64,000 bases of DNA from IMGVR_UViG_3300017991_000048:1-64000, one strand, 5' to 3'. Shown: positions 30,860-63,669, numbered from the stretch's first letter. Translations and numbers: made by a program. Notes: a model not told the origin generated them from the sequence alone.

Positions 30860-30864
30860 ACGAT

Positions 30865-34333: not shown

Positions 34334-34352
34334 TCAACAACTGAGGTGCAAA

Positions 34353-34688: not shown

Positions 34689-34696
34689 GGTGCGAA

Positions 34697-35023: not shown

Positions 35024-35025
35024 TG

Positions 35026-35344: not shown

Positions 35345-35388
35345 TACCCAAGGCTTTACACCAAAACAAGATGAGAAACTTGATAAAA

Positions 35389-35637: not shown

Positions 35638-35666
35638 AGTGTTTATTTTATAGTATACACCATTGT

Positions 35667-36188: not shown

Positions 36189-36200
36189 TTAAATCAAGTT

Positions 36201-36884: not shown

Positions 36885-36918
36885 TCTTATCAAGTAAAAC
36901 CGCTATTTCATCAAACTT

Positions 36919-48245: not shown

Positions 48246-48554
48246 CTAGCCCTCTCTCAAATGGTCCCAAAGGGTCATTTCCGAGAAGTCTATCCTCTCC
48301 CCACCCTCTTCACATTTCGTGTTGCAGAACCCGACTTCATACCAAAGGATCATGCCACACACCTTGCAGCGGCTCGCTCCCTCAGCCGACATATCCAGCT
48401 TCCCCTCTCGCACCAGGGGCCTAACCTGTTTCTTGATTTCTTCAAAAGCGGCGTAATGCCTAACAAGCACACGCCGCACCTCCTTTGGCCCTATCTTGAT
48501 ATTCCCTGGAAGGTAAAGCGTCTCGTAGGTCAAATTCCTGAGCGAGATATCCAT
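48246..48554 (-). CDS. Zn-ribbon protein with LWDHL tag
   Basis: CKVCG...FCNTKC; ends TLWDHLREG. Confidence 0.8.
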   Translation of the reverse strand: MDISLRNLTYETLYLPGNIKIGPKEVRRVLVRHYAAFEEIKKQVRPLVREGKLDMSAEGASRCKVCGMILWYEVGFCNTKCEEGGERIDFSEMTLWDHLREG

Positions 48555-49760: not shown

Positions 49761-50054
49761 ATGCGCCCTCCCAAAATTATCAAAGTCTTTGAGGTTCTGT
49801 TCACCTACAATGGTGCGTTTTACCAGACTGAGTTCTCCGCAGGTACAGATATCGCATGGACAGACGACGGAGAGATCACTCTCGTTTTTCACAGCGTGGA
49901 ACCTGGGGTCCAGTTCATGGGCAAAGGAGCCACGTTCCCGGACGCTATCAGGGATTTAGAGGCCAAGATGCACTCTATTGGACGGTATTTGTTGCGTTTT
50001 ATACAGAGTTCACCCTCTACAGACAACCAGAACCTTTGGGACCATGTGAGGTAA
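49761..50054 (+). CDS. HicB-like-fold protein with LWDHV tag
   Basis: GATFPDAIRDLE; ends NLWDHVR. Confidence 0.75.
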   Translation: MRPPKIIKVFEVLFTYNGAFYQTEFSAGTDIAWTDDGEITLVFHSVEPGVQFMGKGATFPDAIRDLEAKMHSIGRYLLRFIQSSPSTDNQNLWDHVR

Positions 50055-50058: not shown

Positions 50059-50534
50059 ATGTCGTTCGTTGTCCCGTACAGCAGTAGCCCAAATGCCTTC
50101 TATTGCTCCCGTTGCAACAAGACTTTTGTCTACAACAGAACTTTGGAAACCCCTCCCTGTCCTACCTGCGACGTGGTTGAGGCTGAGTTCCCTGACGAAC
50201 CGGACCGGGTAAAGGTTCTAGAAGCTGAGTTAGACATATACAGACATGCTTGCCAAAAAGCAGTCAATGCGCTTCGTGTCAAACGACTGGGATGCCAAGC
50301 TACTCAGCGATCGCCTGATGACCCCCAAGCTCTTTTGGACGAATGTGCCGTTCTCAATAACAATGATTACCGGCCTACCTCTATGCAGCGATTCTGCAAT
50401 ATTATAAAGGTGCTGACGATTTCCATGACGGTCTGCTCATCAAAAGAGAGATAGACTCCCTTTTTGACAAGGCACAAGCCTACTGGACTCCCACCCCTGA
50501 CTCCACCCTTTGGGACCATGTGAAGGAACCGTAA
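50059..50534 (+). CDS. Helical-domain paralog with Zn ribbon and LWDHV tag, 1-nt deletion near 50394
   Basis: CSRC..CPTC; out-of-frame continuation LQYYKG...KREIDSLF...STLWDHVKEP*. Confidence 0.7.
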
Positions 50535-50939
50535 ATGTCCAGAACACTCTCAATCGCAGAACAACAGCTTGAACTCGCTCGAAGTGACTTGGCAATCCTG
50601 GAACAAAGGCACAACCTTCTCAGGGCTCAACTCTTGAAGCTGATCACGGCACTCAGGGACAGGCGTACCACCACCGAAGATCAGAGCATCATACCTACCG
50701 ACATCACTGACGGTAACTTACGGGACTTGGTTGAGTATGAGATGAACCTGCTCAAAGAACTGCCCCTCTTCAGTGAGCTATATAGTAGTCTGGCTCGATA
50801 TTTTGGGGCTGCTCCCAACACCAACGTAATGGCTGACGCTAAACACCGGCTTGTCAGTCTTTATGAACAGGAGATGAGCAAACGTTATGGCAATCAACCC
50901 TCCATCTCTCTTTGGGCCGTTCTTAAGGATTTGCCATGA
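50535..50939 (+). CDS. Helical-domain paralog with LWAVL tag variant
   Basis: LRDRR..E...L..; ends SLWAVLKDLP. Confidence 0.75.
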   Translation: MSRTLSIAEQQLELARSDLAILEQRHNLLRAQLLKLITALRDRRTTTEDQSIIPTDITDGNLRDLVEYEMNLLKELPLFSELYSSLARYFGAAPNTNVMADAKHRLVSLYEQEMSKRYGNQPSISLWAVLKDLP

Positions 50940-50964
50940 CTTTCCTGGTGTAATTATACTCTAT

Positions 50965-51672
50965 ATGGACCTACACCCCCTCTATCTCGAAGGCACCGAA
51001 CTTGACGACTGGGCTGTCAATAACGACCCTGACCCCGCCTTGTATTACAAGACAGCCATGGAAGCTCAAATTCAGAAACTTGAAGCTATCAGCGTCATTC
51101 TCCCGGACTTTGCCAATGCAGGCGTTCCCCCACGGGTTGTGGGGCATCACATTTCCAAGTCCGTCAAACTTCCTGTCACTTGCTTTATGTTCAGTCTTGA
51201 AGGCTTTGAGGCATTCGCTTTTATCCGGGACAATTTCCATGATATCAAGGTCGTGGTTGTTTCCGACGTTCCGGTCCACATCCCCTATTCCGTTGTCCAC
51301 ATCGAATGGACTCAAGAGCATTATGATTCCGAACTCAAAAGCTTCAGCGAGTACCTCTCAGATGAAACTCTGGGTCCAGAAGACGCTCGTAAGCGTAAAG
51401 ACCTGATCGCGTCCGGAACCGACGATTGGTACAAGCAATGGTCTTCTGGGACCATTTTACGTAAGGAAGGCCACATATATCGTGCCGGTAGCCACCAATC
51501 TCACTATTGTGAGGGTATCCGGGAACTCGGATTGGAGGAGTCCGTGTTCAAACCTTACGAGGCCGGTGACAAGGCTTTCGTCTGTGAGGTCTATTCTTAT
51601 TCCACCGTCGCCACAATTTTGGAGTGTATTATTAGCTCCCTCGATATGGCCGAATCTCTGGAGCAGGAATAA
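50965..51672 (+). CDS. Hypothetical protein
   Basis: GGTGTAATT box upstream; VVGHH.SKSVKLP. Confidence 0.75.
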   Translation: MDLHPLYLEGTELDDWAVNNDPDPALYYKTAMEAQIQKLEAISVILPDFANAGVPPRVVGHHISKSVKLPVTCFMFSLEGFEAFAFIRDNFHDIKVVVVSDVPVHIPYSVVHIEWTQEHYDSELKSFSEYLSDETLGPEDARKRKDLIASGTDDWYKQWSSGTILRKEGHIYRAGSHQSHYCEGIRELGLEESVFKPYEAGDKAFVCEVYSYSTVATILECIISSLDMAESLEQE

Positions 51673-51711
51673 TTCTCTGGCCGAACGGTGTAATAGTTGA
51701 TAATATCACCT

Positions 51712-52194
51712 ATGCCTGTCTGCAAGCACTGCAATTCCAATATCCCCTATGAAGGGGGTGTGATCGTTTCCGGGAAGCTTGAATACTGCTCTTTGACGTG
51801 CTTTGCGGTGCGTGTGTTGGAACCTGACCCCACTGACGCAAATCCTAAAAACGAGCTTCACGGCGGGTGTGTAGTCTGTCAAAAGCTAATTTACAATGTA
51901 GGCCCGGTTCATATCCCTGACCCAGACGACGCCGGTATGTGGTTCTGCCCCGATTGCTGCCCACCCGATGAGATAGTTAAGAAGGTGCGTCTTCAGGACG
52001 GTGATTATTACGTCTGTACTCATTGTGGCATGAGGTATCTTATCTCTACCTTCCCTCTCTGGCTTTCCGCGTTTGATAACGGCGTTTATTGCAGTTTGGC
52101 CTGTAGGCAAGGCTCCAGGAATGGCATCCGGAAGCCGTCGCCTGCCAACCTTTGGGACCATCTAACCTTTGGAGGTTCAAGTGACCATACCTAA
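51712..52194 (+). CDS. Multi-Zn-finger (YCSxxC) protein with LWDHL tag
   Basis: Three CxxC/YCSLxC units; paralog of 62178. Confidence 0.75.
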   Translation: MPVCKHCNSNIPYEGGVIVSGKLEYCSLTCFAVRVLEPDPTDANPKNELHGGCVVCQKLIYNVGPVHIPDPDDAGMWFCPDCCPPDEIVKKVRLQDGDYYVCTHCGMRYLISTFPLWLSAFDNGVYCSLACRQGSRNGIRKPSPANLWDHLTFGGSSDHT

Positions 52195-52711
52195 AACCGT
52201 AATGTTCAAAGGCAAAAAGCGTAAAGTCAAAGCTTCTGCTGATGAGTGCGGCTCCTACACCGTCTCCCTTGGCAGTCAAGGCGTGATCCATGTCCGTAAG
52301 TACTTTTCCGGATTTGTAGCCCGGTGCAACGGGCGTAGCATTCAGGGTAATGGGATGTTCCGTCACACTTTCCAGGAAGCCGTCCAAAGCCTGGAAGAAA
52401 ACCTCTTACCTCAAACCATAATGTTTGGCGGCAAGAGACGTAAGGTTACTCCCGGACCCGTTATCATCTTTATTAATTTAGGTAAGGATTTGGGTGATAT
52501 CGAGGTACGTCCTTATCATTACGACTCCAAGTATCATATGCCTGACGGTGCCAGCAATTCCGGGTATTTCGCTCGATACGCCATGGGGAACACCGCTCAA
52601 GGAATAGTGAGAGGCGACACTTTCAGGGGAGCCGTCCAAAAACTTGAGGCGGAAGCACTCAAGTTTTTCAAGGCAATTGGTGCCGAACTTGGATATGAGG
52701 TTGAGGGTTAA
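52169..52711 (+). CDS. Tandem P.T.MF.GK.RKV family protein
   Basis: Two copies of the 30865/54776 domain. Confidence 0.75.
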   Translation: MEVQVTIPKTVMFKGKKRKVKASADECGSYTVSLGSQGVIHVRKYFSGFVARCNGRSIQGNGMFRHTFQEAVQSLEENLLPQTIMFGGKRRKVTPGPVIIFINLGKDLGDIEVRPYHYDSKYHMPDGASNSGYFARYAMGNTAQGIVRGDTFRGAVQKLEAEALKFFKAIGAELGYEVEG

Positions 52712-52713
52712 CC

Positions 52714-52908
52714 ATGCCAGATCAGTTTGGGTGCCAGTTGTGCGGCGGCAAGGGCATGGCATTCATGCTCCGTATCCCCCTTGATACCGGAGAGACACGG
52801 ACTCTCTTTTTCTGTTCCGATGGATGCCGTGCCAGATTCAGAGCATTACTCCCCACCCCCAAAATCATACACCCCGATCTAAGTCTTTGGGATCACCTCA
52901 GAGAGTAA
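52714..52908 (+). CDS. TRASH-like Zn finger with LWDHL tag
   Basis: CQLCG...FFCSDGC; ends SLWDHLRE. Confidence 0.8.
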   Translation: MPDQFGCQLCGGKGMAFMLRIPLDTGETRTLFFCSDGCRARFRALLPTPKIIHPDLSLWDHLRE

Positions 52909-52910
52909 TA

Positions 52911-53165
52911 ATGAACTGCCTGACCTGTAATGAGCCAATTGGCCATACAATTTACTTCCGAAGGCGGGGCAATCATTCTGACCAGAAGGCCCTGCTTTAC
53001 TTCTGTTCCGGGCATTGCAGGTTCCGTGCCATTACAGAAGGCGGCTTCACCTCGTGTGATGGTTGCCTACGAACCCCTTCTTGTGACCCTCACTGTTCAT
53101 CGGGCCGGGGAACCAACTTCACAATCAAACCCATGACTCTTTGGGATTATCTGAGGCATTCTTAA
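52911..53165 (+). CDS. Zn finger with LWDYL tag
   Basis: CLTC...YFCSGHC; ends TLWDYLRHS. Confidence 0.75.
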   Translation: MNCLTCNEPIGHTIYFRRRGNHSDQKALLYFCSGHCRFRAITEGGFTSCDGCLRTPSCDPHCSSGRGTNFTIKPMTLWDYLRHS

Positions 53166-53218
53166 AACACACCGTCTTGCGATTCGGTGTAATACTTGAT
53201 AATATCCACAAGGTCATT

Positions 53219-53815
53219 ATGCCCGAACTGATCGTCACAGACTCCGATTTGAGCGACCGGACCAAGGTTGCCCCTTGTACTCTTTACGTGTGCAAAAGTG
53301 ACCGTCCTGCTACCAACGACGGGCTTTACTGGCGCGTAGTGTACACAATTTCGGCATGTGTGGACGATGTTTTGGGGCATTTCCACACGAAAGAGGATGC
53401 GATCAAGTTCGCTGAAGAGCTTTCGGACCCCAGAGAGTTCCTTGGACTCAAAGTTCAGAACGACCATTTTCGGCAAGAGATAGCCGAACGACAGGGGCAA
53501 TTAGAAGCTCTCAAAAACATAGCCGACGCTATGGTCCAGGAACTTAAGAAAAGACGCGCTCCACACCCGGACGATTCTGAAGGGTTTACAACAGCGTCCG
53601 AATTGAGTTTTGAGTTAACGCAGTTGCGTCTCGGAGCCTTTGACCCCGACTTTCCCAGGCTTCTAACTTTTCTTCTGAGGCATTACCAGGGCGCGGAAAG
53701 CCCTCTGGAGTTAAAGTTGCAAGTCGATTCCGTCTGGGACTGGTATCAAATCAAGCAAATCGAGGGCGATCCTAACTCACCTACATTGTGGGACCACCTA
53801 GAAAACAAGGAATAA
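53219..53815 (+). CDS. Helical-domain paralog (module A) with LWDHL tag
   Basis: GLYWRVV module + ELKKRR...KLQVDSVW + TLWDHL. Confidence 0.8.
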   Translation: MPELIVTDSDLSDRTKVAPCTLYVCKSDRPATNDGLYWRVVYTISACVDDVLGHFHTKEDAIKFAEELSDPREFLGLKVQNDHFRQEIAERQGQLEALKNIADAMVQELKKRRAPHPDDSEGFTTASELSFELTQLRLGAFDPDFPRLLTFLLRHYQGAESPLELKLQVDSVWDWYQIKQIEGDPNSPTLWDHLENKE

Positions 53816-53816
53816 C

Positions 53817-54065
53817 ATGCCTGACATGCCTGACAGCGAATCCCTCAGAGCCTTGCAAGCCCTGTTATCAGAATATGACAAAGCGAATGATGAGACTCTG
53901 GAAGCTCTCAAAGCCGGGGATATGGCTAAGTATGAAAAACTCGCTCAAGCGAAAATGAAAGCCATAGGCGAGCTTGGCCCTGAAGCCTTAAGAAATGTTA
54001 TGAGGGAGCATCCCGAATTCAGACCCCAAGGTTATGACCCGGACTCGGAGGATCAAAATGCCTGA
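53817..54065 (+). CDS. Small helical protein
   Basis: In operon. Confidence 0.65.
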   Translation: MPDMPDSESLRALQALLSEYDKANDETLEALKAGDMAKYEKLAQAKMKAIGELGPEALRNVMREHPEFRPQGYDPDSEDQNA

Positions 54066-54444
54066 GTACGGACCTTCTGAAACCATTGCGGAGTTAAGAT
54101 TCCGGTGTGGTCAGTATCAGGACAGGCTTGATGACCTCCAAATGAGGCTCAATAACATTGAACGTGTCGGCAAAGATTTGGTCCATGAACTCAAAAGTAG
54201 ACGGCCCCGACACCCAGAAGACTCTGAGGAGTATGAGTTAACAGCCGAACTTATGTTTGAAACGGGCCAGCTTCGTGACGGTGTTTGGGATCTCGACCTT
54301 GAAAAGGTTTTGGAGTACCTCGGAGAACGTTACAGATATACAGAGAACCCTTGGTTGATCAAAAGTCAGGTTGACACTGTTTGGGTAAGGTTCCAAGCCG
54401 AACAAACCAAACATTCCAACCTTTGGGATCATTTGAAGGGGTAG
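54058..54444 (+). CDS. Helical-domain paralog with LWDHL tag
   Basis: Closely similar to C-half of 53219. Confidence 0.8.
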   Translation: MPEYGPSETIAELRFRCGQYQDRLDDLQMRLNNIERVGKDLVHELKSRRPRHPEDSEEYELTAELMFETGQLRDGVWDLDLEKVLEYLGERYRYTENPWLIKSQVDTVWVRFQAEQTKHSNLWDHLKG

Positions 54445-54445
54445 T

Positions 54446-54760
54446 ATGGACTGGGTATCTCAATACTGGGTTGGCTTTTGTGTGGCGGGTTATATCTGCC
54501 TTTTGGTCCTTTATTTTCGCACCCTTTACCACTACTACAAGATGAGAGATCTTTACTCCCATGTCCAGGTTGAGAACTCAAAACTACTCAATCGTAACCT
54601 TGAACTACTTGAGCGCAACCATCAGCTTGACCGTCAAAATACCTATCTGGAGCGTCAAAATAGCTCGATGCTCAGAGCCCAACCAACCAAGACAAAAGCT
54701 CGAAAACCGAAACCACCACCGGACGACCCTAAAAGCCTTTGGGATCATGTGAAGGACTAG
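54446..54760 (+). CDS. Membrane-anchored coiled-coil protein with LWDHV tag
   Basis: N-terminal TM YWVGFCVAGYICLLVLYF, heptads, Pro linker, SLWDHVKD. Confidence 0.8.
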   Translation: MDWVSQYWVGFCVAGYICLLVLYFRTLYHYYKMRDLYSHVQVENSKLLNRNLELLERNHQLDRQNTYLERQNSSMLRAQPTKTKARKPKPPPDDPKSLWDHVKD

Positions 54761-54775
54761 AAAAGAGTTGATGTT

Positions 54776-55042
54776 ATGAAATTAGATGCACCTAAAACCG
54801 TAAAGTTCGCCGGTATCGAGAGAAAAGTCAAAGTACACAGGGGCTTTGCCCGTCTCAGACCTGGGATTGACGTGATAGTGCTCACAAGCGGCAGGTACTA
54901 CGCCATGGAGAGGCACCAGACCGACTCTGCCTTTACGGGCACAGGCGATACCTTCCAGGAAGCTGTATCCAACCTGGAAGCCAATGCACTATCCAAGTTC
55001 AAGGCTTTGGGCAAGATGCTAAATTATGATGTGGAGAAATGA
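54776..55042 (+). CDS. P.T.KF.G.ERKV family protein
   Basis: GDTFQEAVSNLE...LG..LNYDVE. Confidence 0.75.
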   Translation: MKLDAPKTVKFAGIERKVKVHRGFARLRPGIDVIVLTSGRYYAMERHQTDSAFTGTGDTFQEAVSNLEANALSKFKALGKMLNYDVEK

Positions 55043-55326
55043 CCAAAATCATACTCACAAGCGAAAGCACACCTGTCATTGACCGGGAAGGCGAGACCCC
55101 TCCTGGCACTTTGATTGTGTGCAAGACCAATAACCCGGATTCTATCAAGCGGGGGTTATATTGGCGTGTGGTACAGGTGCATTCCCAGATGGGTGTTGAC
55201 CTTCAGGGACGCTTTGCCACCAAAACGTCTGCCATAGCTTATACGGATAAAATGACAAACGGATCACCTATGACTGTTGTCCCTGAAACCACCAAAACCC
55301 TTTGGGACCATCTGCGATGCCAATAA
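55039..55326 (+). CDS. Module A alone with LWDHL tag
   Basis: TPPGTLIVCKTNNP...RGLYWRVV; ends TLWDHLRCQ. Confidence 0.8.
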   Translation: MTKIILTSESTPVIDREGETPPGTLIVCKTNNPDSIKRGLYWRVVQVHSQMGVDLQGRFATKTSAIAYTDKMTNGSPMTVVPETTKTLWDHLRCQ

Positions 55327-55928
55327 GAAGAATTGACACACCGGAACAGCTACTAGAAGAAATCAGTCGCTTTTTCCGATCAAACGCCTCGGTAAGCAGG
55401 GTTGACGCTGCTTACACCTTGCGGCAACTGGCCAAGCGTATCAACCCGCCTGACGTCAACTCTTCTGAACCCCTTGACCCCAAACCTGAAGCAGTCCCAA
55501 TTGACGGCCTCAATAGAATCCACGGTATGGTCAAAGACCAAACAAAATCCATTAGAGAGCTACGCAACGCTCTTTTCCGAAGAAACAAAGAGGATCTAAA
55601 GACAAGCGACACGGGAAAGGCTTTGATCCGTGAAATGCGTGATCGTAGGGCCAGATATCCAAATGAGCCAACTCTTTACGAAACACCCCTCAGAGAGCTA
55701 CTTCAATACGAACTTGACTGTCTTCTGAAGGGCGCTTGGCATACGAAAAAAGACACCCTGGCTTATATCAAGCTAAACTATAACGTTACCGCCGACTTCA
55801 AAGAGGCGGTTGACTTCAAAAAGAACATCGATGCTCTCTGGGATCAGTTTGAAACCGAATGGATTGAAGACCATGGCGGCAAATCCACCCTTTGGGACCA
55901 TTTAGAAAAGGACGCCACAAATGACTGA
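55317..55928 (+). CDS. Leader-module plus helical-domain paralog with LWDHL tag
   Basis: RIDTPEQLLEEI...SR..AAYTLRQLAKRI resembles MEKIANPQELA leader; KKNIDALW; STLWDHL. Confidence 0.8.
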   Translation: MPIRRIDTPEQLLEEISRFFRSNASVSRVDAAYTLRQLAKRINPPDVNSSEPLDPKPEAVPIDGLNRIHGMVKDQTKSIRELRNALFRRNKEDLKTSDTGKALIREMRDRRARYPNEPTLYETPLRELLQYELDCLLKGAWHTKKDTLAYIKLNYNVTADFKEAVDFKKNIDALWDQFETEWIEDHGGKSTLWDHLEKDATND

Positions 55929-56330
55929 ACTGGCAGACATCGGTGGTATCTTTGCCCTTCTAGCTCTCTGGCATTTCATTGCTGACTGGCTGTTCCAATC
56001 TCACTATACGGCGGTCAATAAGTCTGCCAGACCCTTGATCCGGGCGTGGCACTCATTCGCCTATGCGGTGTACTTCTTTCCCCTCGTGTTCTTTGTTCCC
56101 ATTCTAACCGGAACCCTGCTACTCTTGTGGCTTTTCAGTTCCCATTACTTCATCGATTCTTACTACCCTCTCTACTGGTGGGCCAAGTACCAACGGAAGA
56201 TGCCAGAACCTAACAATCCCAGACAACTTGAGGCTTGGGTAGCCTCACCGTCAACCCTGTTCTGTTTATTACGGTTGACCAAATTTTTCACCTCATCTGC
56301 CTCTTACCTTTGGCGTGGCTCGTAAGATGA
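55921..56330 (+). CDS. DUF3307-like membrane protein, 1-nt deletion near 56258
   Basis: HFIADWLFQS, HSFAY, SHYFIDSY; DQIFH motif appears in the shifted frame. Confidence 0.75.
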
Positions 56331-56572
56331 ACACCTATATCTTCCCCTCAGACACCCGTGTACTGGTCGTTATGGCTGAAACGATAGAAGTGGCCGTTTC
56401 CATATTACAGCCGACGCAGTTGGAAATAAATAAGGTCGTGGTCCTATCTGACAGTAATACCACTGTGGAGATTTCATGGACCGATAAAAAGGCTCATATG
56501 GTCAAAAGGACCGGACCGCAGGAGCAGATCCGGGTTTTATGGGATCACCTGAAAAGTGATAATGAGGATTAG
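56327..56572 (+). CDS. Small protein with LWDHL tag
   Basis: Ends VLWDHLKSDNED. Confidence 0.75.
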   Translation: MNTYIFPSDTRVLVVMAETIEVAVSILQPTQLEINKVVVLSDSNTTVEISWTDKKAHMVKRTGPQEQIRVLWDHLKSDNED

Positions 56573-56573
56573 T

Positions 56574-56804
56574 ATGGACCCCACAGAATGTCTTTTGGAA
56601 TTACTCAAGGCTTGCAAAGAGAAACGAACTATAGATGCCAGAGATCAAGCCAAGGCCCTGTATGAGCACCTACTGAGAAGCGGAGCCGTGCCTGACTCCG
56701 ACCGTGCTGTCATTGACTATGCAGACACCTATCTTCCAGAGAAGACCCCCTCAGAGGAACGTGAAGCGTTTATGGCGGCTCTCAACTTCATGGACGAAAA
56801 GTGA
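56574..56804 (+). CDS. Small hypothetical protein
   Basis: MDPTECLLEL... in operon. Confidence 0.65.
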   Translation: MDPTECLLELLKACKEKRTIDARDQAKALYEHLLRSGAVPDSDRAVIDYADTYLPEKTPSEEREAFMAALNFMDEK

Positions 56805-57540
56805 ATGGCCAAACTCGTAGTCACAGACGAACCCTCAGTTGTAATTGACCGGGAAGGGCTCACCCCAACGGGTACTCTGATTGTATGTAGAACCAATAAC
56901 CCCAATGCCTTCGACAGAGGGTTGTATTGGCGTGTGGTCAAAGTGGCAAAAACCGGAGTTGACGATATAGGCCAGTTCGCCACCAAACAGTCTGCATTGG
57001 ATTATGCTGAAAAGGTGGTGGAACCAGAAGTAATTAGGATTTTTGGGATCGAATTTACCCCTAGCGATGATATTGAGGCGGATGACAATGTTTATACTTC
57101 TGATCTTGTTCTTTGGGATTGGGTCGAGGTTTACTATCAACGATTGGGTGATGCGTTCCAGGTAGGCATCCGAACGGGCCTTAGAGGTTTGGGGCTGGCT
57201 GGCACTGGCCCTCATTTGAAGGCGGCTGTGCATGACTTGGAACGGCACATTGAGGGTATCCTGAATCTCTGCCTGCAACTCGTCAATACCAAGCCTGAGA
57301 AGTTTAATGAGACGCAAGTTTATCTCGAACGGATAGTCAAGCTTAGGGCCACGGTTCAAGAACAAATAGAGACGGAACAAAAATGGGAGTTTGAAGTATA
57401 TTGGCGACATCTATCGTGACGCCTATCCGAAAGGCTGCGATACGGCGTACCAGTATAAGCAAGACATTGATGCCGTTTGGGAACGTATCCAGCGCGATTA
57501 TGACCAGGGCGGCTCAACTCTTTGGGACCATTTAAAGTGA
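56805..57540 (+). CDS. Modules A+B plus helical tail with LWDHL tag, frameshift near 57392
   Basis: ORF 56805..57419 continues out of frame LKYIGDIY...KQDIDAVW...STLWDHLK*. Confidence 0.7.
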
Positions 57541-57923
57541 TTCAAACGATTAAAACACACCCCAAGACCTGTCCCATCACCAACGTGATCCACACGTCTG
57601 GAAACTTGGAGCAAATTTTCATTCATAATGAGCAGTACAGCGCCCTTTGTGAGACTCATTACCGGCTCGGACTCAAGCCGGTAGACTTTATGAAAACCGT
57701 TTTCGGACGTCAGACCTATTGCATGACCACTTTTCGCCGGTACTGGGTCTGGGAATTTGATACACACCGTGTCTATGCCAATAACCAAAAGGGCATAGTC
57801 TTTGAAGTCCCTCTCAATTCCAAGGGACGCAAGCCCCAACTTAAGCAAGCTCTTCAGGCATGGTGTGGGTTTTATCGCACCGTCGTTAGAACCGGACGAA
57901 AGATTGAGAAGCGACATGGCTAA
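57537..57923 (+). CDS. Hypothetical protein
   Basis: GTGA overlap with upstream stop. Confidence 0.65.
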   Translation: MIQTIKTHPKTCPITNVIHTSGNLEQIFIHNEQYSALCETHYRLGLKPVDFMKTVFGRQTYCMTTFRRYWVWEFDTHRVYANNQKGIVFEVPLNSKGRKPQLKQALQAWCGFYRTVVRTGRKIEKRHG

Positions 57924-58452
57924 GACTTTTACAGAGTTTGCATCTTACACTCTGGGCTCGCACCCGACCGCTGTTTGTGCCCGTTGCGACAAGAGATACC
58001 ACGAGGAACCCCGTCGTCTTTGCCCTCATTGTGAACAGGAGTATTCTCAGAGGTATCGCCCCTACTTCTCTGAAGGCCATATACGGCAAATTCTGAACCT
58101 CGAACACCAAATCACTGAGTATAAGGAACTCGTTACTCGTTATGAAAACCTCTGTCTGGAAGCGACTAACGCCTTGCGGTTCCGTCGCATCAGAACCGGA
58201 CCCGAACATAGCAATTCATACCACGCCTTAGATCACGAGGTGCGTCTGTTGACAGGGGGTAGGGACTGGAAGCCTTCCACAGTATTCACAAATCAAGTCG
58301 TCAGAGGCTACTATGAAAAAGCCGAAACCGCTGATGAGAGCTTTAACCTCAAGAAACATCTTGATGCCATTTGGGAAGAGGCACATTCTAACAAGTGGTT
58401 CTCATCCGTCAAAAGCTTTTGGGATCATTTAAAGGGAGCAAAGAATGGCTAG
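57916..58452 (+). CDS. Zn-ribbon helical-domain paralog with FWDHL tag
   Basis: CARC..CPHC; LRFRR; KKHLDAIW. Confidence 0.8.
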   Translation: MAKTFTEFASYTLGSHPTAVCARCDKRYHEEPRRLCPHCEQEYSQRYRPYFSEGHIRQILNLEHQITEYKELVTRYENLCLEATNALRFRRIRTGPEHSNSYHALDHEVRLLTGGRDWKPSTVFTNQVVRGYYEKAETADESFNLKKHLDAIWEEAHSNKWFSSVKSFWDHLKGAKNG

Positions 58453-58969
58453 AACGGACCCGGAATGGTCAAACTCACGATCCCGGCGTTATGAAACCGT
58501 GCTTGCCGTTTGCTCTATATGTCGCAGAGAGTATCACAAACACTACTATCCCAAGGGCTGCCCCGACTGCACTGATCCTGTTTATCCTTACGCTTTTCCC
58601 CCGGTAGAGCCAGACGTACTAAAAATGGTCCAGATGCGTGGAGAACTTAATCGTTGTCACCAACAGATGACCCGGTATGAGGAACTTTGTCAGGAAGCTA
58701 CCGATTCTTTACGCCGTCGCCGTGTTTTGGAGGGAGAAAAACACAAAGATACCTGCCAAGCCTTGCTTGATGAGTTGCGTATCCTTGACGATGATGACTG
58801 GACCCCGACCACGGGATTTGTATACCGTGTCGTCGCACGATACTACGACAGAGCCAGCACCCCCAAGGAAGGCTTCCATTTGAGAAAACAGCTTGAGGGT
58901 ATTTACGAAAATGCCCGTGATAAGTGGGTATTGTCTGTCAAAAACTTCTGGGACCATTTGAGAAAATGA
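58445..58969 (+). CDS. Zn-ribbon helical-domain paralog with FWDHL tag
   Basis: Close paralog of 57916. Confidence 0.8.
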   Translation: MARTDPEWSNSRSRRYETVLAVCSICRREYHKHYYPKGCPDCTDPVYPYAFPPVEPDVLKMVQMRGELNRCHQQMTRYEELCQEATDSLRRRRVLEGEKHKDTCQALLDELRILDDDDWTPTTGFVYRVVARYYDRASTPKEGFHLRKQLEGIYENARDKWVLSVKNFWDHLRK

Positions 58970-59439
58970 CCGATAAGGATACAGAAAATAGACTCAGGCG
59001 TATCTGTCAGGAAATGGGGCACCCGAACCGGGAAGTTGCCAACCGGGAAGAAACGGAAGCTTTGCTTCGTACTATTGATTCACTCCGCAAGGACGAGTGT
59101 CCGTGTTGCAAAGACGGGGAACAGTTAGAATCTTATAAAGCCGTCTGCTGGTCGGCAATCACAGCTTTACAACAGAACCGCACCGGTCGAAAGCCCTTCC
59201 CCACGAACCACGCTGAATCCGTAAGAGAACTATATAATGAGATCGAACAGATGAGGCATCCCGATTGGGAGCCCCACCATACATATGTAAATGAAGTCGT
59301 TACCTCGTACTTTGAGGGAGCTACAACCTACGAGGAAGCTATTGAGCGTAAGAAGTTTCTAGATCGCATCTGGAATCAACAGCTTCAAAGCCATTGGACT
59401 TCTGATTACACCCTTTGGAGCGCCCTTAAAGATGGCTAG
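58966..59439 (+). CDS. Helical-domain paralog with LWSAL tag variant
   Basis: DWEP, KKFLDRIW, TLWSALKDG. Confidence 0.8.
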   Translation: MTDKDTENRLRRICQEMGHPNREVANREETEALLRTIDSLRKDECPCCKDGEQLESYKAVCWSAITALQQNRTGRKPFPTNHAESVRELYNEIEQMRHPDWEPHHTYVNEVVTSYFEGATTYEEAIERKKFLDRIWNQQLQSHWTSDYTLWSALKDG

Positions 59440-59444
59440 GTGCT

Positions 59445-60071
59445 ATGCTGATAATCTCAGATTCTGATACGATAAGCCTGCACCCGGTTATAACCCCAAC
59501 GGGCACCATAATTGTATGCAGGACCACTGATCGTGATATTGCTCAGAACGATAAGGGCTGGAGAGTAGTCCGGGTAAACGAGTTTGAAAACCTTGCTCAG
59601 TTAGGTCGGTACAGTACAAAAGAAGAGGCGGTAGAAGTCGGATTGGAGATAACTCGCAACCTAGTCCACACCACCGAGTCGGCCCGAATTGATGAACTTG
59701 AACGCAGGCTATCAGATCGTGATACCCGGCTTGACGCGCTCAATAAACACATAGCTAATTGGGAACGGACTGCCCAGGAACTCGTTAAGAGAATAAGGTC
59801 AAAAAGACAGGTCGTTTTTAGTGATGACCCTCCCCCCGTAAGACGGTCGCAACTCGATGAATTGCAGCGAGAGTGTGAGATCCTGGAAGAGGGCCACGCC
59901 TGGGAACCAATATTCTCTCAGATTACAGATTGGGTGTATAAAGCGTATTGTCAGAACTCATCGGAAGCGTATAGGTACAAGATATTACTCGACAGTATAT
60001 GGGATCAGTACCAAGAAGAATTAGCTAAACGCGGCGAGATATCGACTCTCTGGGATCATTTGAATGATTAG
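59445..60071 (+). CDS. Module A plus helical-domain paralog with LWDHL tag
   Basis: TPTGTIIVCRT..WRVV; KILLDSIW; STLWDHLND. Confidence 0.8.
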   Translation: MLIISDSDTISLHPVITPTGTIIVCRTTDRDIAQNDKGWRVVRVNEFENLAQLGRYSTKEEAVEVGLEITRNLVHTTESARIDELERRLSDRDTRLDALNKHIANWERTAQELVKRIRSKRQVVFSDDPPPVRRSQLDELQRECEILEEGHAWEPIFSQITDWVYKAYCQNSSEAYRYKILLDSIWDQYQEELAKRGEISTLWDHLND

Positions 60072-60729
60072 ACCCGAAAGTGTTAAGATCTTTGATGTTG
60101 AGTTCTCCAAGGAGGAGGGCTCCACACTCTATACTTCTGACTCTTTCGACGGGTGGGTCGAGGTTTGGGAAGTGCAGTATAAGATCGAGGTCAGTCTCCG
60201 CATCGAGAAACGTATCATCGGGTCTTCTGGGGATACCTTGGAAGAAGCGATCGAGAGCCTCGAAAACTTGGTAGAAAGGATTTGGGCTGGACTTCACAAG
60301 GTCGTCACCTCCAAATGGGGCTCTTCCAAACCTTATTTAGGTCGGATAGCCGAACTCGAAGGGAAAGTTAAATCACTTGAGGCTATGCTTTCGGGGTATC
60401 AAAGACGTGATACCGAGTGGCAAACTCTTGCCGACGATCTTTACAAGGCCATGCGAGCCAGGAGACAAGTAGTACCCGCTGACAATCGTGTGATATCAGA
60501 GTTTATCGAGCTTTTACGCAGAGAGTATGAGATTCTGTTAGACGGTGCCGCTTGGCAGCCGACTTTTACTCAGATTCAAGGGCAACTTGAGAACATCTAC
60601 CAATGTGACCCCGCGAGTGCCCCTGAACGTAAACGAGCGATAGACAGTGTTTGGGAGCTTGCTCAATTAAAGCTCGCTCTCGCTGGCTACCGCACAACCC
60701 TTTGGGAGCACTTGAACGGTGATAGTTGA
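60064..60729 (+). CDS. Module B plus helical-domain paralog with LWEHL tag
   Basis: VKIFDVEF..YTSD..WVEV, GDTLEEAIESLE; KRAIDSVW. Confidence 0.8.
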   Translation: MIRPESVKIFDVEFSKEEGSTLYTSDSFDGWVEVWEVQYKIEVSLRIEKRIIGSSGDTLEEAIESLENLVERIWAGLHKVVTSKWGSSKPYLGRIAELEGKVKSLEAMLSGYQRRDTEWQTLADDLYKAMRARRQVVPADNRVISEFIELLRREYEILLDGAAWQPTFTQIQGQLENIYQCDPASAPERKRAIDSVWELAQLKLALAGYRTTLWEHLNGDS

Positions 60730-60931
60730 TTGCTCATACGATGAAATCAACTACTGGTTTTACACGGTCTGGTTCCAGGAAAAACGGAGAGTGGTTCTCG
60801 GATACTGTGAGAACACAGACGGGAAGCATCCCATGGTTTATGTGGATGAAGAGTGGCTGGAACCAAGGGGCTGGATAGCCAGAACATTCGTCAACTGTAT
60901 TGGACGATACCTGAAGTGGGCACAATGCTAG
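60719..60931 (+). CDS. Small hypothetical protein
   Basis: Overlapping operon arrangement. Confidence 0.55.
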   Translation: MIVDCSYDEINYWFYTVWFQEKRRVVLGYCENTDGKHPMVYVDEEWLEPRGWIARTFVNCIGRYLKWAQC

Positions 60932-61305
60932 TTAGTATGGAGGATTTGATTATGAAAACCAAAAATGAGTCAGAACAAGATATCTTAAAGAGGAAGTACG
61001 GCAAGGTGTATGACCAGCTAATTAAAATGACAACTTTACTCCGATCCAGACGGGGCGAAAGGGAGTACGCCCCTGGCAACACTCCGTCAAATATCATTCA
61101 TAACACAATCGAGTGGGAGATAGATCAACTCAGAGGTGCCCCTAAAATTCCAGAGCTATTGAAATGGATAGAACAGTATTACAACTCACTCGATACTACT
61201 CAAGAGTTGATCGCCTTCAAACGGTTGCTTGACCGTCAGTGGGAAGAGCAATTGACAGAGAGCATGGGTAGCTCCAAGATTCTTTGGGATCATCTCACGG
61301 AGTAG
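60925..61305 (+). CDS. Helical-domain paralog with LWDHL tag
   Basis: LRSRR; KRLLDRQW; ILWDHLTE. Confidence 0.8.
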   Translation: MLVSMEDLIMKTKNESEQDILKRKYGKVYDQLIKMTTLLRSRRGEREYAPGNTPSNIIHNTIEWEIDQLRGAPKIPELLKWIEQYYNSLDTTQELIAFKRLLDRQWEEQLTESMGSSKILWDHLTE

Positions 61306-61311
61306 ATCGAA

Positions 61312-61815
61312 ATGCGACTGTTAGTTTTTGACGAAAAGTGTAGGTGTTCAAAAGGTTTTTTGATCCCTGTCAATACAGGCTTGCCTCAGCCATGCGATTG
61401 TCTTTCTGAGGCTGAATTTGACAAAGTAAAAGGCAAGCTGGAGCTTTGCGTCCAGTCGAGTTCCCCGTGGCGTGTTCTTGAATATCAGACCAAAGCTTTG
61501 GAAGATCAGCTTCGTACAATGCGTAACCAGCTTCGCAAGATTGTTAGGTTGCTTAGATTCAGGCGGGGTGTAGTTGACGCTGACTTTGATAAGGCGAGCA
61601 CTGATAGTTTGGCGCGGACTGAAATCCATGAGTTAGAACAGACTCCTGGATTTGCGGAAATACTAACGTCGTTGAATCGGTGTTATAAGAATGCCACGAC
61701 TGAAGATTTGACCCGGTATAAGCGCACCCTCGATGATCTTTGGGAAAAGTGGACAATAACACGCGGCTCTAAAGACCCAAAGGCACTATGGGACCATCTG
61801 CTCGACAACTCTTAG
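61312..61815 (+). CDS. Cys-motif helical-domain paralog with LWDHL tag
   Basis: CRC.KG...PCDC; LRFRR; KRTLDDLW. Confidence 0.8.
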   Translation: MRLLVFDEKCRCSKGFLIPVNTGLPQPCDCLSEAEFDKVKGKLELCVQSSSPWRVLEYQTKALEDQLRTMRNQLRKIVRLLRFRRGVVDADFDKASTDSLARTEIHELEQTPGFAEILTSLNRCYKNATTEDLTRYKRTLDDLWEKWTITRGSKDPKALWDHLLDNS

Positions 61816-62099
61816 GAATTTTTCAAGTGATCCCATAGTGTTATAATCTTGTCGCCGCACTCATCCTTGGCTATTATCATGTCACGAGAGCCGCCGACCG
61901 GGACACTTCCCCAGTGCGGCCAAGCGTGTTTGACTTCTCCCCCATATTTCATGCACAAATGGGGTGGTTTAGGCGACGGCATAGCCTTCTGTTCTGCTTC
62001 TGTCGGCTTCAGGTGTGGGCAGTCTGGTTTACATAATTTCGCCATGTTAGGCTCTGGGAAAGGCCATTTTAGGGGTAGAGGCGGGTAATGATACGCCAT
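61812..62099 (-). CDS. Cys/His-rich protein with LWDHL tag
   Basis: Paralog of 35389; GGTGTAATA box upstream. Confidence 0.8.
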   Translation of the reverse strand: MAYHYPPLPLKWPFPEPNMAKLCKPDCPHLKPTEAEQKAMPSPKPPHLCMKYGGEVKHAWPHWGSVPVGGSRDMIIAKDECGDKIITLWDHLKNS

Positions 62100-62177
62100 G
62101 TCTAATATATTACACCATCATTTGTGGTTTTTACACCAATTCCTTGCCGTTCGGTGTAACAGTTGATAATATCACCT

Positions 62178-62678
62178 ATGCCCCAATGTAGACAATGCCG
62201 CTGTGTTTACACCCACAAGGGTGTGACTTTTCTCGGACCAAATAGTAACATTCATTGGTGCTCATGGGTCTGTTATAACCTAGCCAGAGCCAACGCCGTC
62301 ACCGAAAAGTGTGACGAATGCGGTAAGCATCTTCATAAGGGGCCTGCTTACATTTGCGAGACTCTCACAGGTGGTAATTACTTCCGGTGTGAGGCGTGTT
62401 ATTCAGTTGCCGATCCAAACGAAATCCCGGAAGTCAAATGTTTTCGCGATCGAATGGTTCATGTGCGAATTAATGACAATGAGATGTTTTTCCGTTGCGA
62501 TTCGTGCAACGGTTACGCCCCTCTTGAACGCCCTGTTTACTTTAGTCTCTACAACCATGGAACCTATTGTAGCCCTGTCTGTAGTCACAATAGTCATGGC
62601 AAACAAGACCCTGAATCCGACAAGGATCTTTGGGGCCACCTAACAAAGGAGCCTGAACAATGTCAGAAGAAGAGTTAG
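62178..62678 (+). CDS. Multi-Zn-finger protein with LWGHL tag
   Basis: Paralog of 51712; WCSWVC, YCSPVC. Confidence 0.75.
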   Translation: MPQCRQCRCVYTHKGVTFLGPNSNIHWCSWVCYNLARANAVTEKCDECGKHLHKGPAYICETLTGGNYFRCEACYSVADPNEIPEVKCFRDRMVHVRINDNEMFFRCDSCNGYAPLERPVYFSLYNHGTYCSPVCSHNSHGKQDPESDKDLWGHLTKEPEQCQKKS

Positions 62679-62896
62679 AACCTTTTAAGTTAGGGCCTAC
62701 CGGCGAGCACCCCAAGGGCAAGCTGCACGAAACTGATGAGGGTGAGATCCGATTGGGTGTAGCAAGCTATAAGGGCAATGTGGTTATCAACTTTGCGACA
62801 CCTGTAGCTTGGCTCGCCATGACTCCTGCTGAGGCGATCCAGTTCGCTGAGGTGGTCAAGAACTGTGCCGTAAATATGAAGACACCGGAGAAGTGA
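62660..62896 (+). CDS. Small phage protein
   Basis: G.TG.HP.GKL.E.DEGEI.LGV pattern; RBS AAGGAG. Confidence 0.75.
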   Translation: MSEEELEPFKLGPTGEHPKGKLHETDEGEIRLGVASYKGNVVINFATPVAWLAMTPAEAIQFAEVVKNCAVNMKTPEK

Positions 62897-63084
62897 TGGA
62901 TCATTTGCTAGCTCGAATAGGCACTATCGCTGTGCCAATAATTGGTGTTGCACTGTTATTGGTTGCTGGTTCCCTCGTTATGAAGATGTTTGGGCTGGCT
63001 CTTATGATGAGCATGTACTTTGCCGTTTATGAGATGGGCAAATATGACGGTATAAAACGGGCGGGACAGAGAAAAGGCGGTTGA
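62893..63084 (+). CDS. Small membrane protein
   Basis: Long hydrophobic stretch. Confidence 0.65.
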   Translation: MMDHLLARIGTIAVPIIGVALLLVAGSLVMKMFGLALMMSMYFAVYEMGKYDGIKRAGQRKGG

Positions 63085-63088
63085 CTGT

Positions 63089-63667
63089 ATGCCGTCAAAA
63101 AAGACCAAAGTAATAGTTCAAAAGACAGGTTCGACAAGCATTGGCTTTGGCAGCGCCCTGACCCTTATACTCATCACACTCAAGCTGACGGGCCACATTG
63201 ACTGGTCTTGGATTTGGGTTCTGTTTCCGTTTTGGCTCCCTGTAGCAGCCATGATCGGTCTGGCGTTAGGGGCCATTCTGATGGTTGCCCTGTTCGGTAC
63301 TGGCTTCATGGTGGTTGAGTTCTTCACAGAGCGACATGCCAAGAAAAAGCAAGACTCGCATGAACGATTGCATAGACAATTGCATGAGCAAAGACTAGAA
63401 ACCGAGAGGACGGCTCGACAACGGCACCAACGTTCACACGAGCGAAGGCTAGAGTACCCTTTACTCCGTGAAAGGGTACGAGGATTGAGAGCGGCACATG
63501 ATCTAGCCTTGTCTTTTTCTGGCGTTGAAGCTGATCTTGAAGCTGAGGAACAAAGGCTTGAGGCTGAGATACAAGAGCTTGAATCTCGTCTACAGGAAAA
63601 GAGTGACCCGCCAGAGGACAAACCGACAGAACCCGAACAGACTTTATGGGATCACCTGAAGGATTAA
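63089..63667 (+). CDS. Membrane protein with coiled coil and LWDHL tag
   Basis: LITLKLTGHIDWSWIWVLFPFW TM hairpin, coiled coil, TLWDHLKD. Confidence 0.8.
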   Translation: MPSKKTKVIVQKTGSTSIGFGSALTLILITLKLTGHIDWSWIWVLFPFWLPVAAMIGLALGAILMVALFGTGFMVVEFFTERHAKKKQDSHERLHRQLHEQRLETERTARQRHQRSHERRLEYPLLRERVRGLRAAHDLALSFSGVEADLEAEEQRLEAEIQELESRLQEKSDPPEDKPTEPEQTLWDHLKD

Positions 63668-63669
63668 TC

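Follow-up and report, generated by a model that had tools for sequence, protein, structure and literature searches.

The 398-kb uncultured phage IMGVR_UViG_3300017991_000048 carries about 20 tandem copies of a new helical protein domain fused to swapped N-termini, and these, together with some 40 unrelated small phage proteins, end in the same short peptide (…TLWDHL…), which probably docks them onto one shared, still unidentified partner. The starting point was a first-pass annotation of the window (the 64,000-nucleotide stretch analysed, positions 1 to 64000 of the genome), which described thirteen paralogs sharing a helical C-domain and a terminal tag behind exchangeable N-terminal modules. 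That observation holds and is, if anything, understated. The features of the window are as follows (positions counted from its first letter):

50059..50534 (+), family member 1: zinc ribbon and C-domain, broken by a -1 frameshift near 50.39 kb, with the tag TLWDHV at 50508-50522 in the second frame; the zinc ribbon is 57% identical to that of genome position 65508
50535..50939 (+), family member 2: C-domain only (HMM E 1.1e-25), degenerate tag SLWAVL
53219..53815 (+), family member 3: module A, C-domain and tag; the AF2 model shows a 4-strand sheet plus helix, a 42-residue helix, an RR linker, a 3-helix bundle and a short tag helix
54058..54444 (+), family member 4: minimal form, C-domain and tag; nearest relative of member 3
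55039..55326 (+), stand-alone module A (HMM E 1.4e-39) followed directly by linker and tag (KTLWDHL)
55317..55928 (+), family member 5: unique 87-aa N-terminal region, C-domain and tag
56805..57540 (+), family member 6: module A, module B and a truncated C-domain; a frameshift places the last helix and the tag in ORF 57391-57540
57916..58452 (+), family member 7: zinc ribbon, C-domain and tag (SFWDHL)
58445..58969 (+), family member 8: zinc ribbon, C-domain and tag (NFWDHL); closest paralog of member 7 (E 1.5e-29)
58966..59439 (+), family member 9: C-domain, degenerate tag TLWSAL
59445..60071 (+), family member 10: module A, C-domain and tag
60064..60729 (+), family member 11: module B, C-domain and tag (TLWEHL); its C-domain is sister to that of member 10
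60925..61305 (+), family member 12: C-domain and tag
61312..61815 (+), family member 13: Cys-rich N-terminus, C-domain and tag
49761..50054 (+), small tagged ORF, marginal relative of module B (HMM E 0.007)
51697..53165 (+), three unrelated Cys-rich tagged ORFs (51697-52194, 52714-52908, 52824-53165), with one untagged ORF between them
54446..54760 (+), tagged ORF with one N-terminal membrane helix followed by a basic stretch, which would put the tag in the cytoplasm
56315..56572 (+), unrelated small tagged ORF (VLWDHL)
61812..62099 (-), tagged ORF on the opposite strand, with a tagged orthologue at 45% identity in the sister megaphage G003
62163..63906 (+), three further tagged ORFs (62163-62678, Cys-rich; 63089-63667, with 2-3 membrane helices; 63646-63906, NLFDHL)
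22335..37185 (both strands), ten more tagged small ORFs (22335, 22568, 27610, 28355, 28628, 28824, 32894, 35389, 36201, 36919)
48246..48554 (-), tagged Cys-rich ORF (TLWDHL)

All thirteen family ORFs exist at the positions first assigned to them. With the tag stripped, all-vs-all blastp links the 11 intact members by single linkage (17 of 55 pairs at E<1e-3; best 1.5e-29), and a tag-stripped 105-aa C-domain HMM recovers them at E 1e-25 to 1e-36, plus both broken members (50059 at 6.5e-5; the 57391-57540 piece of 56805 at 0.006). The motifs first noted (L[RK]xRR, E...L....W.P, YY, KKxLDxxW and the tag) are the conserved columns of the family alignment, A1. The same profile shows, however, that the family has about 20 members rather than 13, as seven more lie at genome positions 64640-72548, just beyond the window. 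Furthermore, 50059 is broken as well as 56805, the only member first listed as partial: each has a frameshift, with the rest of the C-domain and an intact tag in another frame. Member 56805 also lacks the middle of the C-domain. Its sequence is reproduced exactly by an independent assembly at about 41x depth.

Modules A, B and the zinc ribbons are confirmed as swapped N-termini. Module A has exactly four copies (53219, 56805, 59445 and the stand-alone 55039; E<=1e-33), whereas module B joins 60064 and 56805 strongly but 49761 only marginally. The earlier label of module B as HicB-like has no Pfam support: no HicB family was found at E<=0.01 among the A1 members scanned, which included 60064 but not 56805, and only the short motif G.T..EA...LE resembles HicB.

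The C-domain itself has no relative in the curated resources searched (Pfam, PHROGs, PDB and AFDB). Pfam gives only sub-threshold coiled-coil noise. Foldseek returned a best E of 0.29 against PDB and 0.022 against AFDB, all with query-normalised TM <=0.3; the best VIA-align Z was 5.4, below helical noise; and the best ESM Atlas score, 0.84, is at noise level. A search of 1.84 billion representative proteins gave 23 hits, of which the strong ones (E <=1e-13) are the phage's own paralogs plus two foreign proteins, P0019 and P0020, except for one repetitive 1862-aa coiled-coil protein that I treat as spurious.

The first-pass interpretation, combinatorial domain shuffling under arms-race diversification such as anti-defence or host-takeover adaptors, is supported only in part. 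Shuffling is supported by architecture, since the closest C-domain pairs carry different N-termini: 53219 (module A) is sister to 54058 (no module) at 96/96 support, and 59445 (A) is sister to 60064 (B) at 89/86. In addition, 56805 carries A and B in tandem, and A also exists alone with only the tag. The formal test is borderline, as the AU test for monophyly of the two A-bearing C-domains gives p = 0.055, and there are too few module copies for module trees. Arms-race diversification fits the setting, a hypervariable block whose gene content is almost entirely different in a sister phage with 70-85% identical core genes, although identity of about 30% permitted no selection test. The adaptor-like anatomy is real, but without a known target or reader a role in anti-defence or host takeover remains conjecture.

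The larger result concerns the tag, which the first-pass annotation treated as part of the family, thereby missing that it marks a much larger, unrelated set of proteins. The pattern [KR]-[TNDS]-L-W-D-H-[LV]-[KRT]-[DE] ends about 61 ORFs in this genome, with 46 strict matches within 17 aa of a stop against 0.1 expected from shuffles, and 46 of 53 occurrences lie within that distance. The 61 tagged ORFs fall into 42 tag-stripped sequence clusters, 37 of them singletons, and 84 non-family carriers have no Pfam or PHROG function beyond zinc ribbons. I found no literature that describes such a tag.

Selection acts on the peptide and not on the DNA. Synonymous codons are mixed (GAT 24 / GAC 18; CAT 29 / CAC 21; the last Leu uses all Leu codons plus Val and Ile codons). 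Information content is confined to codon positions 1 and 2 of five codons: third positions carry 0.16-0.28 bits (0.72 for His, inherent to its codons), and the flanks carry <=0.3 bits from more than 12 nt upstream of the tag and from about 15 nt downstream of it. No Rfam hit was found, and sigma70-like sites are at the shuffle level.

The tag is also conserved through gene turnover. The sister megaphage G003 has 43 tagged ORFs with the same consensus but shares only 13 homologues, and orthologue pairs at 33-56% identity keep the tag or a degenerate form of it. Two core proteins carry the tag in four related phages (G000, G003, G004 and G010), so the tag is ancestral and was later expanded, and its reader should be conserved in the clade or host-encoded. 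These core proteins have no known function, although one shows a generic SH3/KOW-like barrel at borderline scores.

The anatomy of the tag, with a flexible linker, a helix N-cap, a short amphipathic helix and an acidic tail, fits a docking peptide for one common reader. The residue before it is T, N, D or S in 55 of 61 cases (helix N-cap residues), the hydrophobic positions are i, i+1 and i+4, the preceding linker is enriched in P, K, Q and T, the tail is enriched in D and E, and AF2 models the tag as a short terminal helix. About 10% of carriers have predicted N-terminal membrane helices followed by basic residues, which suggests a cytoplasmic site for the tag, and about 25% have zinc-ribbon cysteine pairs.

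At this point, the best explanation, which I consider about as likely as not, is that the array is a lineage-specific expansion of a previously undescribed small cytoplasmic protein with an exchangeable N-terminal module (beta-sheet module A, module B, zinc ribbons, or none), a helical scaffold (a roughly 40-residue helix, a conserved RR linker and a three-helix bundle), a flexible linker, and a short C-terminal helix [TNDS]-L-W-[DE]-H-[LV] followed by a few acidic residues. In this view the tag tethers its carriers, across the accessory proteome, to a single cytoplasmic reader conserved in the clade, while the N-modules would supply different binding specificities and the scaffold would supply spacing or oligomerisation, making the array a diversified set of adaptor-like proteins that connect to one hub. 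The family, the module swaps, the tag statistics, the peptide-level selection and the phyletic spread are demonstrated by the analysis, whereas docking, a single reader and the cytoplasmic site of action are inferred from sequence and models alone, and the identity of the reader is speculative.

The most concrete candidate hub is an AAA+ unfoldase of the phage core, with the carriers being either substrates with a shared degron or adaptors that deliver other proteins. The phage encodes a full-length ClpX (E 2e-104 to solved ClpX) with zf-C4_ClpX, AAA_2 and D2-small domains, a GYVG pore loop and GMGF/GIGF loops, of the IGF type for a host ClpP, and no ClpP was found in the phage. It also encodes a neighbouring Cdc48/p97-like AAA+ with an uncharacterised 260-aa N-region. 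The ClpX N-domain is 74% identical between the two tag-rich phages but 43-49% identical to tag-poor G004, against 82% and 76% for the AAA+ body; N-domains commonly evolve faster, however, so this contrast is weak evidence. Moreover, both ATPases are present in G004, which has no tag expansion, so the phyletic pattern does not single them out. A bolder reading, which is unlikely but not excluded, is that this lineage runs its own targeted-proteolysis or remodelling system, in which ClpX working with the host ClpP, or the Cdc48-like ATPase, reads the LWDHL tail, and the roughly 60 tagged proteins, with the array as the largest set, are interchangeable adaptors bringing different host proteins, such as defence or takeover targets, to that machine. 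This would be a natural viral counterpart of degrader (PROTAC-like) adaptors, with a specificity repertoire that turns over rapidly between sister phages.

Other explanations are each less likely. The tag could instead be a shared degron or timer by which phage ClpX with host ClpP, or a host protease such as Lon, clears the whole set at a defined stage, the carriers being substrates and not adaptors. This is possible but doubtful. In its favour, the phage has a ClpX with a ClpP-docking loop but no ClpP, the tag is C-terminal, exposed on a flexible linker and apparently cytoplasmic, many carriers are tiny ORFans typical of host-takeover genes, and several lambda regulators are protease substrates. 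However, the tag is followed by 1-17 residues, mostly 2-4 and mostly acidic or polar, unlike ssrA-type degrons, which use the free carboxylate (…LAA-COOH), and its presence on two conserved core proteins in four phages is not expected for a disposal mark, though not excluded. Unlikelier still is a virion-loading signal that binds the inside of the procapsid, the scaffold or the portal, so that dozens of small proteins are packaged and injected with the DNA. A flexible linker plus a short conserved C-terminal motif matches encapsulin cargo-loading peptides, megaphage capsids are large, the phage is a tailed virus with a portal and terminase, and pre-made injected proteins would suit anti-defence roles; but the carriers predicted to be membrane-anchored, with the tag on the cytoplasmic side, are hard to reconcile with packaging, and the tagged genes sit in the small-gene accessory block and not with the structural genes.

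About as unlikely is mimicry or exploitation of a host short linear motif that recruits the carriers to a host machine such as RNA polymerase, the replisome or clamp, the ribosome, or the division or secretion apparatus. The classic case of many proteins sharing one C-terminal motif is a hub such as the sliding clamp, and no phage clamp of beta, gp45 or PCNA type was detected, so the phage would rely on host factors; in addition, a GC-rich 4-kb contig of unknown origin carries two tagged Cys-rich ORFs beside an FHA-LuxR regulator. Against this, the tag does not fit the bacterial clamp-binding consensus QL[SD]LF, and a scan of 185,579 species' genomes gave 60 pattern hits, about the chance level I estimated, with only 7 near an ORF end, mostly in two conserved families with a different context, so there is no sign of a cellular tagged proteome. 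Finally, it is very unlikely that the ending has no shared function, being a relic of common descent, gene conversion or a recombination cassette at gene 3' ends, or an RNA or translation-level signal such as a Shine-Dalgarno-like or termination-context element. Genes are tightly packed and often overlap, and TGG-GA is fixed at the nucleotide level because it encodes W-[DE], but third positions are free, flanks carry no information, carriers are unrelated outside the tag, L, H and L/V are conserved through different codons, and the tag occurs on both strands and at convergent gene ends and stays constant, or nearly so, in the divergent orthologues.

Accessory genes of huge phages are almost all unannotatable ORFans, and a shared tag gives an experimental handle on about 60 of them at once in each genome, which could group a third of a hypervariable gene block into one functional system through the hub they would all use. 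If that hub is the phage's own ClpX or Cdc48-like ATPase, this would assign a role to the phage-encoded Clp-family ATPases noted in jumbo phages without a known function (PMC7824862, PMC6102473), and would show that phages can diversify the specificity of a single machine by shuffling small modules onto a common scaffold and tail. The tag would also be useful as a bioinformatic marker for such proteins, and possibly as a portable targeting peptide.

Among known systems, SspB-type ClpX adaptors have the same three-part anatomy of a variable binding module, a long flexible linker and a short C-terminal peptide (XB) that in SspB docks on the zinc-binding N-domain of ClpX, and the phage encodes a ClpX with such a domain. 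However, no Pfam or structural similarity to SspB was found, the carriers number dozens and not one, and the phage peptide is acidic and aromatic (LWDHL), whereas canonical ClpX N-domain ligands are basic and hydrophobic (the XB peptide ends in LRVVK). Clamp-binding tails (bacterial QL[SD]LF, the archaeal/eukaryotic PIP box, and the C-terminal gp45-binding tails of T4 gp43, gp33 and gp55) likewise place one short, usually C-terminal, hydrophobic motif on many unrelated proteins that plug into a single hub, but the consensus [KR][TNDS]LWDH[LV] differs, no DNA_pol3_beta_3, DNA_PPF (gp45) or PCNA_N match was found in G000, G003 or G004, and the carriers are ORFans and not replication or transcription enzymes. 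Encapsulin cargo-loading peptides and the T4 capsid-targeting sequence direct diverse cargo to an HK97-fold shell by a short conserved peptide on a flexible linker, and the phage has such a capsid lineage, although the T4 signal is N-terminal and cleaved off, encapsulin peptides have a different consensus, and the carriers predicted to be membrane-anchored argue against packaging. The ESCRT-III MIM motifs that bind the MIT domain of the AAA+ ATPase Vps4 offer an analogy only: helical paralogs each end in a short amphipathic helix after an acidic linker that docks on the N-domain of a classic-clade AAA+, and the Cdc48-like ATPase of the phage belongs to that clade, but no homology to ESCRT-III/PspA or to MIT domains was detected. 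Lastly, the lineage-specific multigene families of jumbo phages and giant viruses are also tandem arrays of fast-evolving paralogs in accessory regions, absent from close relatives, whereas here the paralogs combine one new scaffold with swapped N-modules and share their C-terminal tag with about 40 unrelated families.

The IMG/VR virus record that opens with the 64-kb window (G000) is 398,071 bp long, is estimated to be complete, and has a 123-bp exact terminal repeat and 48% GC. It is a tailed, myovirus-like megaphage with a terminase large subunit, a portal and a baseplate wedge. Although a Pfam Terminase_6N search was negative, PHROGs identified TerL. The record comes from a sediment metagenome, and the same sequence appears at low depth in three other runs, two labelled as sediment metagenomes and one as seawater. 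No tRNA or Rfam element was found in the window, and a scan for promoters and terminators was uninformative. Two loci at some distance from the paralog array encode recognizable functions:

5753-9161 (-): polysaccharide-biosynthesis genes in a phage, an NAD-dependent epimerase/GDP-mannose-dehydratase-like protein (E 8e-46) and a polysaccharide pyruvyl transferase.
37258-39308 (+): a Myb-like DNA-binding protein directly followed by a 396-aa protein with sigma-70 region 4 and several further HTH motifs, which may be a phage transcription factor pair at the edge of the block of tagged genes.

The first-pass annotation described thirteen ORFs sharing a helical C-domain, and this observation holds, as all 13 ORFs are present (members are named here by their start coordinates). 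So that the shared C-terminal tag could not itself create the similarity, I removed it before testing. All-vs-all blastp still connects the 11 intact members (best pairs 1.5e-29, 1.5e-20 and 3.2e-16; 17 of 55 pairs below 1e-3), and a 105-residue tag-stripped profile scores them at 1e-25 to 1e-36. The same profile identified seven further paralogs at 64.6-72.5 kb, just outside the window, so the family has about 20 members rather than 13. Two members are broken: 50059 needs a -1 shift at about 50.39 kb, whereas 56805 has lost the middle of the domain and needs a shift at about 57.39 kb to reach its last helix, and in both an intact tag follows in the other frame. The two frameshifts could be fixed mutations or sites of programmed slippage. 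An independent assembly of the source run reproduces 53,000-58,000 with no differences at about 41x depth, so the 56805 lesion is not an assembler artefact. The conserved columns are those that the annotation had listed, namely L[RK]xRR, E...L....W.P, YY and KKxLDxxW. The paralogs are only about 20-36% identical, so synonymous sites are saturated and dN/dS does not apply.

AlphaFold2 on the 18-paralog alignment gives a mean pLDDT of 81. In this model module A is a four-stranded sheet plus a helix (residues 1-67), followed by one 42-residue helix, the RR linker and a three-helix bundle (125-183), and the tag forms a short terminal helix at 190-194. I was unable to identify anything similar. Pfam has no match, Foldseek searches with the model gave a best E of 0.29 against the PDB and 0.022 against AFDB clusters, all with TM <=0.3 by the query, an independent structural aligner gave a best Z of 5.4, and ESM Atlas scores are at noise level. 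An exhaustive profile search of 1.84 billion representative proteins returned 23 hits, of which the strong ones are this genome's own paralogs, apart from one repetitive 1862-aa coiled-coil protein that I treat as spurious, plus two foreign proteins. One of the foreign proteins lies on a 1.2-kb contig beside a second member that has a zinc-ribbon N-terminus, so the arrayed, module-swapped family exists in at least one other uncultured phage. These only foreign relatives of the C-domain (contigs Ga0180433_10317080 and Ga0180434_10085829) end in the variant tags GLWNALRSKD and GLWNTLQDE, which are similar to the GLWDTLQEK of G000 member 64640 and may represent a tag subtype. The two closest complete relatives of this phage lack the C-domain and modules A and B entirely.

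Module A occurs exactly four times (53219, 59445, 56805 and the stand-alone 55039; E <=1e-33), whereas module B joins 60064 to residues 71-187 of 56805, with ORF 49761 as a marginal relative (E 0.007). Related zinc ribbons pair 50059 with 65508, and 57916 with 58445. On the C-domain tree, 53219 (module A) is sister to 54058 (no module) at 96/96 support, and 59445 (A) is sister to 60064 (B) at 89/86, so the nearest C-domains carry non-homologous N-termini. Furthermore, 56805 stacks A and B, and A also exists with nothing but the tag, which is direct evidence of module gain, loss or exchange. However, the AU test against a single origin of the A-bearing C-domains is borderline (p = 0.055). Thus, the domain shuffling proposed in the first-pass annotation is supported by architecture but is not proven by phylogeny.

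The tag is the bigger finding. A strict pattern, [LF]W[DE][HY][LV] within 22 residues of the stop, occurs in 46 ORFs of at least 40 aa, against 0.1 in residue shuffles, and of 53 occurrences anywhere, 46 lie within 17 residues of a stop. With degenerate versions included (W is kept in 59 of 61) there are 61 carriers, which lie mostly at 22-82 kb, on both strands, and make up about a third of the genes in that block. With the tag stripped, they fall into 42 clusters, 37 of them singletons. Codon usage shows selection on the peptide: Asp is GAT 24 / GAC 18, His is CAT 29 / CAC 21, and the last position uses all six Leu codons plus Val and Ile codons. Information content is confined to codon positions 1 and 2 of the five tag codons, with flat flanks, which rules out a promoter, terminator, RBS or recombination cassette, and recent gene conversion.

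The consensus is [KR]-[TNDS]-L-W-D-H-[LV]-[KRT]-[DEG]-[DE], in which the residue before the tag is a classical helix N-cap and the hydrophobic residues fall at i, i+1 and i+4. The preceding 15 residues are enriched in P, K, Q and T, and the tail in D and E. About 10% of carriers have N-terminal membrane helices (by prediction) followed by basic residues, which puts the tag in the cytoplasm, and about 25% have at least two CxxC-type pairs. Eighty-four non-family carriers from two phages have no recognisable function. Further loci were noted within or near the array:

48914-49212 (+): ORF 48991-49212 ends in a tag-like TVWDHLTDQD but overlaps ORF 48914-49198 in another frame, and may be a third frameshifted tagged gene.
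51697-52194, 62163-62678 and G000 79919-80302: a second, three-member tagged paralog family, rich in cysteine pairs, of which the first two members both start MIISPMP.
52169-52711 (+) and 54776-55042 (+): untagged ORFs inside the array that carry the same G.TFQEAV..LE motif that the first-pass annotation called HicB-like; 52169 contains it twice, as an internal duplication.
G000 69181-69744 (+) (5181-5744 of the stretch L001): an Rv2179c-like 3'-5' exoribonuclease in the middle of the paralog array, 80% identical to a G003 gene that lies in a different, conserved part of that genome.

Tracing the tag across related phages, a degenerate DNA pattern for L-W-[DE]-H gives 54 sites in this genome and 49 in its sister megaphage G003 (416.5 kb, 55% GC), whereas controls give 0-1. 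G003 has 43 strict carriers with the same consensus. The two phages are syntenic, with core proteins mostly 55-90% identical. However, only 13 of the 61 carriers have any homologue in G003, and most of those homologues keep the tag at 33-56% identity. G004, a complete 411.6-kb relative with TerL 80% identical, has no expansion, nor do nine other relatives or fragments, or seven unrelated contigs that had single pattern hits. G004 does contain, at about 189-193 kb, a run of about ten small ORFs whose ends repeat strings such as FQLQRKNYSPS, indicating a repeated DNA array in this sister megaphage. G004 and the related phage G010, which share roughly 200 core ORFs with G000 and G003, nevertheless carry the tag on two conserved core proteins. 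The 104054 family ends in TLWDHL, NLWDHL, TLWDCL and TLWDHL, and the 119066 family ends in TIFEHL, DLFAHL, TLFDHL and NLFDHL. So the tag is ancestral in the clade, and its reader should be conserved there, or host-encoded, whereas G000 and G003 have extended the tag to dozens of fast-turning-over accessory proteins. Annotation of the conserved tagged core proteins and their neighbours gave no function, although one has a generic SH3/KOW-like barrel at borderline scores.

Tag-pattern scans of IMG/VR, metagenomes and species genomes found tag-rich DNA only in G000 and the G003-type phage, plus one 4-kb contig with two tags. All other hits were single and at chance level, and the metagenome and species-genome scans gave no sign of a cellular tagged proteome. 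The exceptional contig (Ga0196978_1004160, 4053 bp) is GC-rich and unrelated to the two megaphages. Its two small Cys-rich ORFs, 1434-1835 (-) and 2993-3331 (-), end in DTLWDHLSEDHDNPL and KTLWDHLR and flank an FHA-LuxR-type regulator, so the tag may occur in a third lineage or in a cellular genome. Short ORFs ending in ...PYPCRL[RQ][KR]HKTLWDHLRIW are also conserved between two Desulfobacterales MAG chromosomes, but this is not evidence for a host.

A phyletic profile meant to find a reader of the tag gave 106 genes shared by G000 and G003 but absent from G004. Of these, the most conserved and those inside the tag block were annotated, and they comprised an exoribonuclease, DUF5662, a PS decarboxylase, PTH2, a ligase-like protein, AAA_33 and unknowns, with no peptide-binding hub. 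The premise of this comparison then fell away, because G004 keeps the tag on two core proteins. No beta, gp45 or PCNA clamp was detected. The conserved core does, however, encode two candidate readers:

G000 155179-156432 (-) and 159691-161253 (-), outside the window (11179-12432 and 15691-17253 of the stretch L029): a full-length ClpX and, 3 kb away, a Cdc48/p97-like single-ring AAA+ with an uncharacterised 260-residue N-region, both conserved at 70-82% in sister megaphages.

The ClpX is canonical, with a zinc-finger N-domain, a GYVG pore loop and a GMGF/GIGF ClpP-docking loop (E 2e-104 to solved ClpX), but there is no ClpP anywhere in the genome. Its N-domain is 74% identical between the two tag-rich phages and 43-49% identical to G004, whereas the ATPase body is 82% and 76%. 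That is suggestive but weak, and both ATPases are also present in G004. A single complex prediction of the tag peptide (the last 28 aa of ORF 63089) with two copies of the ClpX N-domain, made without controls, scored 0.02 and counts neither for nor against binding. I found no paper mentioning LWDHL or describing any shared C-terminal tag on phage proteins.

At this point, the array is best read as a diversified set of modular, adaptor-like proteins, each with a specificity module, a helical scaffold, a linker and a docking helix, that belongs to a much larger tagged accessory proteome converging on one reader. The family, its swapped modules and the statistics and spread of the tag are results of the analysis, whereas docking, the common reader and the adaptor-like role are inferred from sequence alone. 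It is very likely that the tag is a functional peptide signal, and probable that it docks its carriers to a common partner, but that this partner is one of the two phage AAA+ ATPases is no more than a doubtful possibility. The carriers could be timed substrates or packaged cargo instead of adaptors, and the reader could be a host hub instead of a phage unfoldase. Nor does the DNA show any trace of a cassette that would explain how new genes acquire the tag.

Phage-encoded ClpX has been noted in Rak2-like jumbo phages without an assigned role (PMC7824862; PMC6102473). The N-domains of such unfoldases are established docking sites for short terminal peptides: the XB peptide of SspB docks on the ClpX N-domain, and MIM motifs dock on the MIT domain of Vps4.
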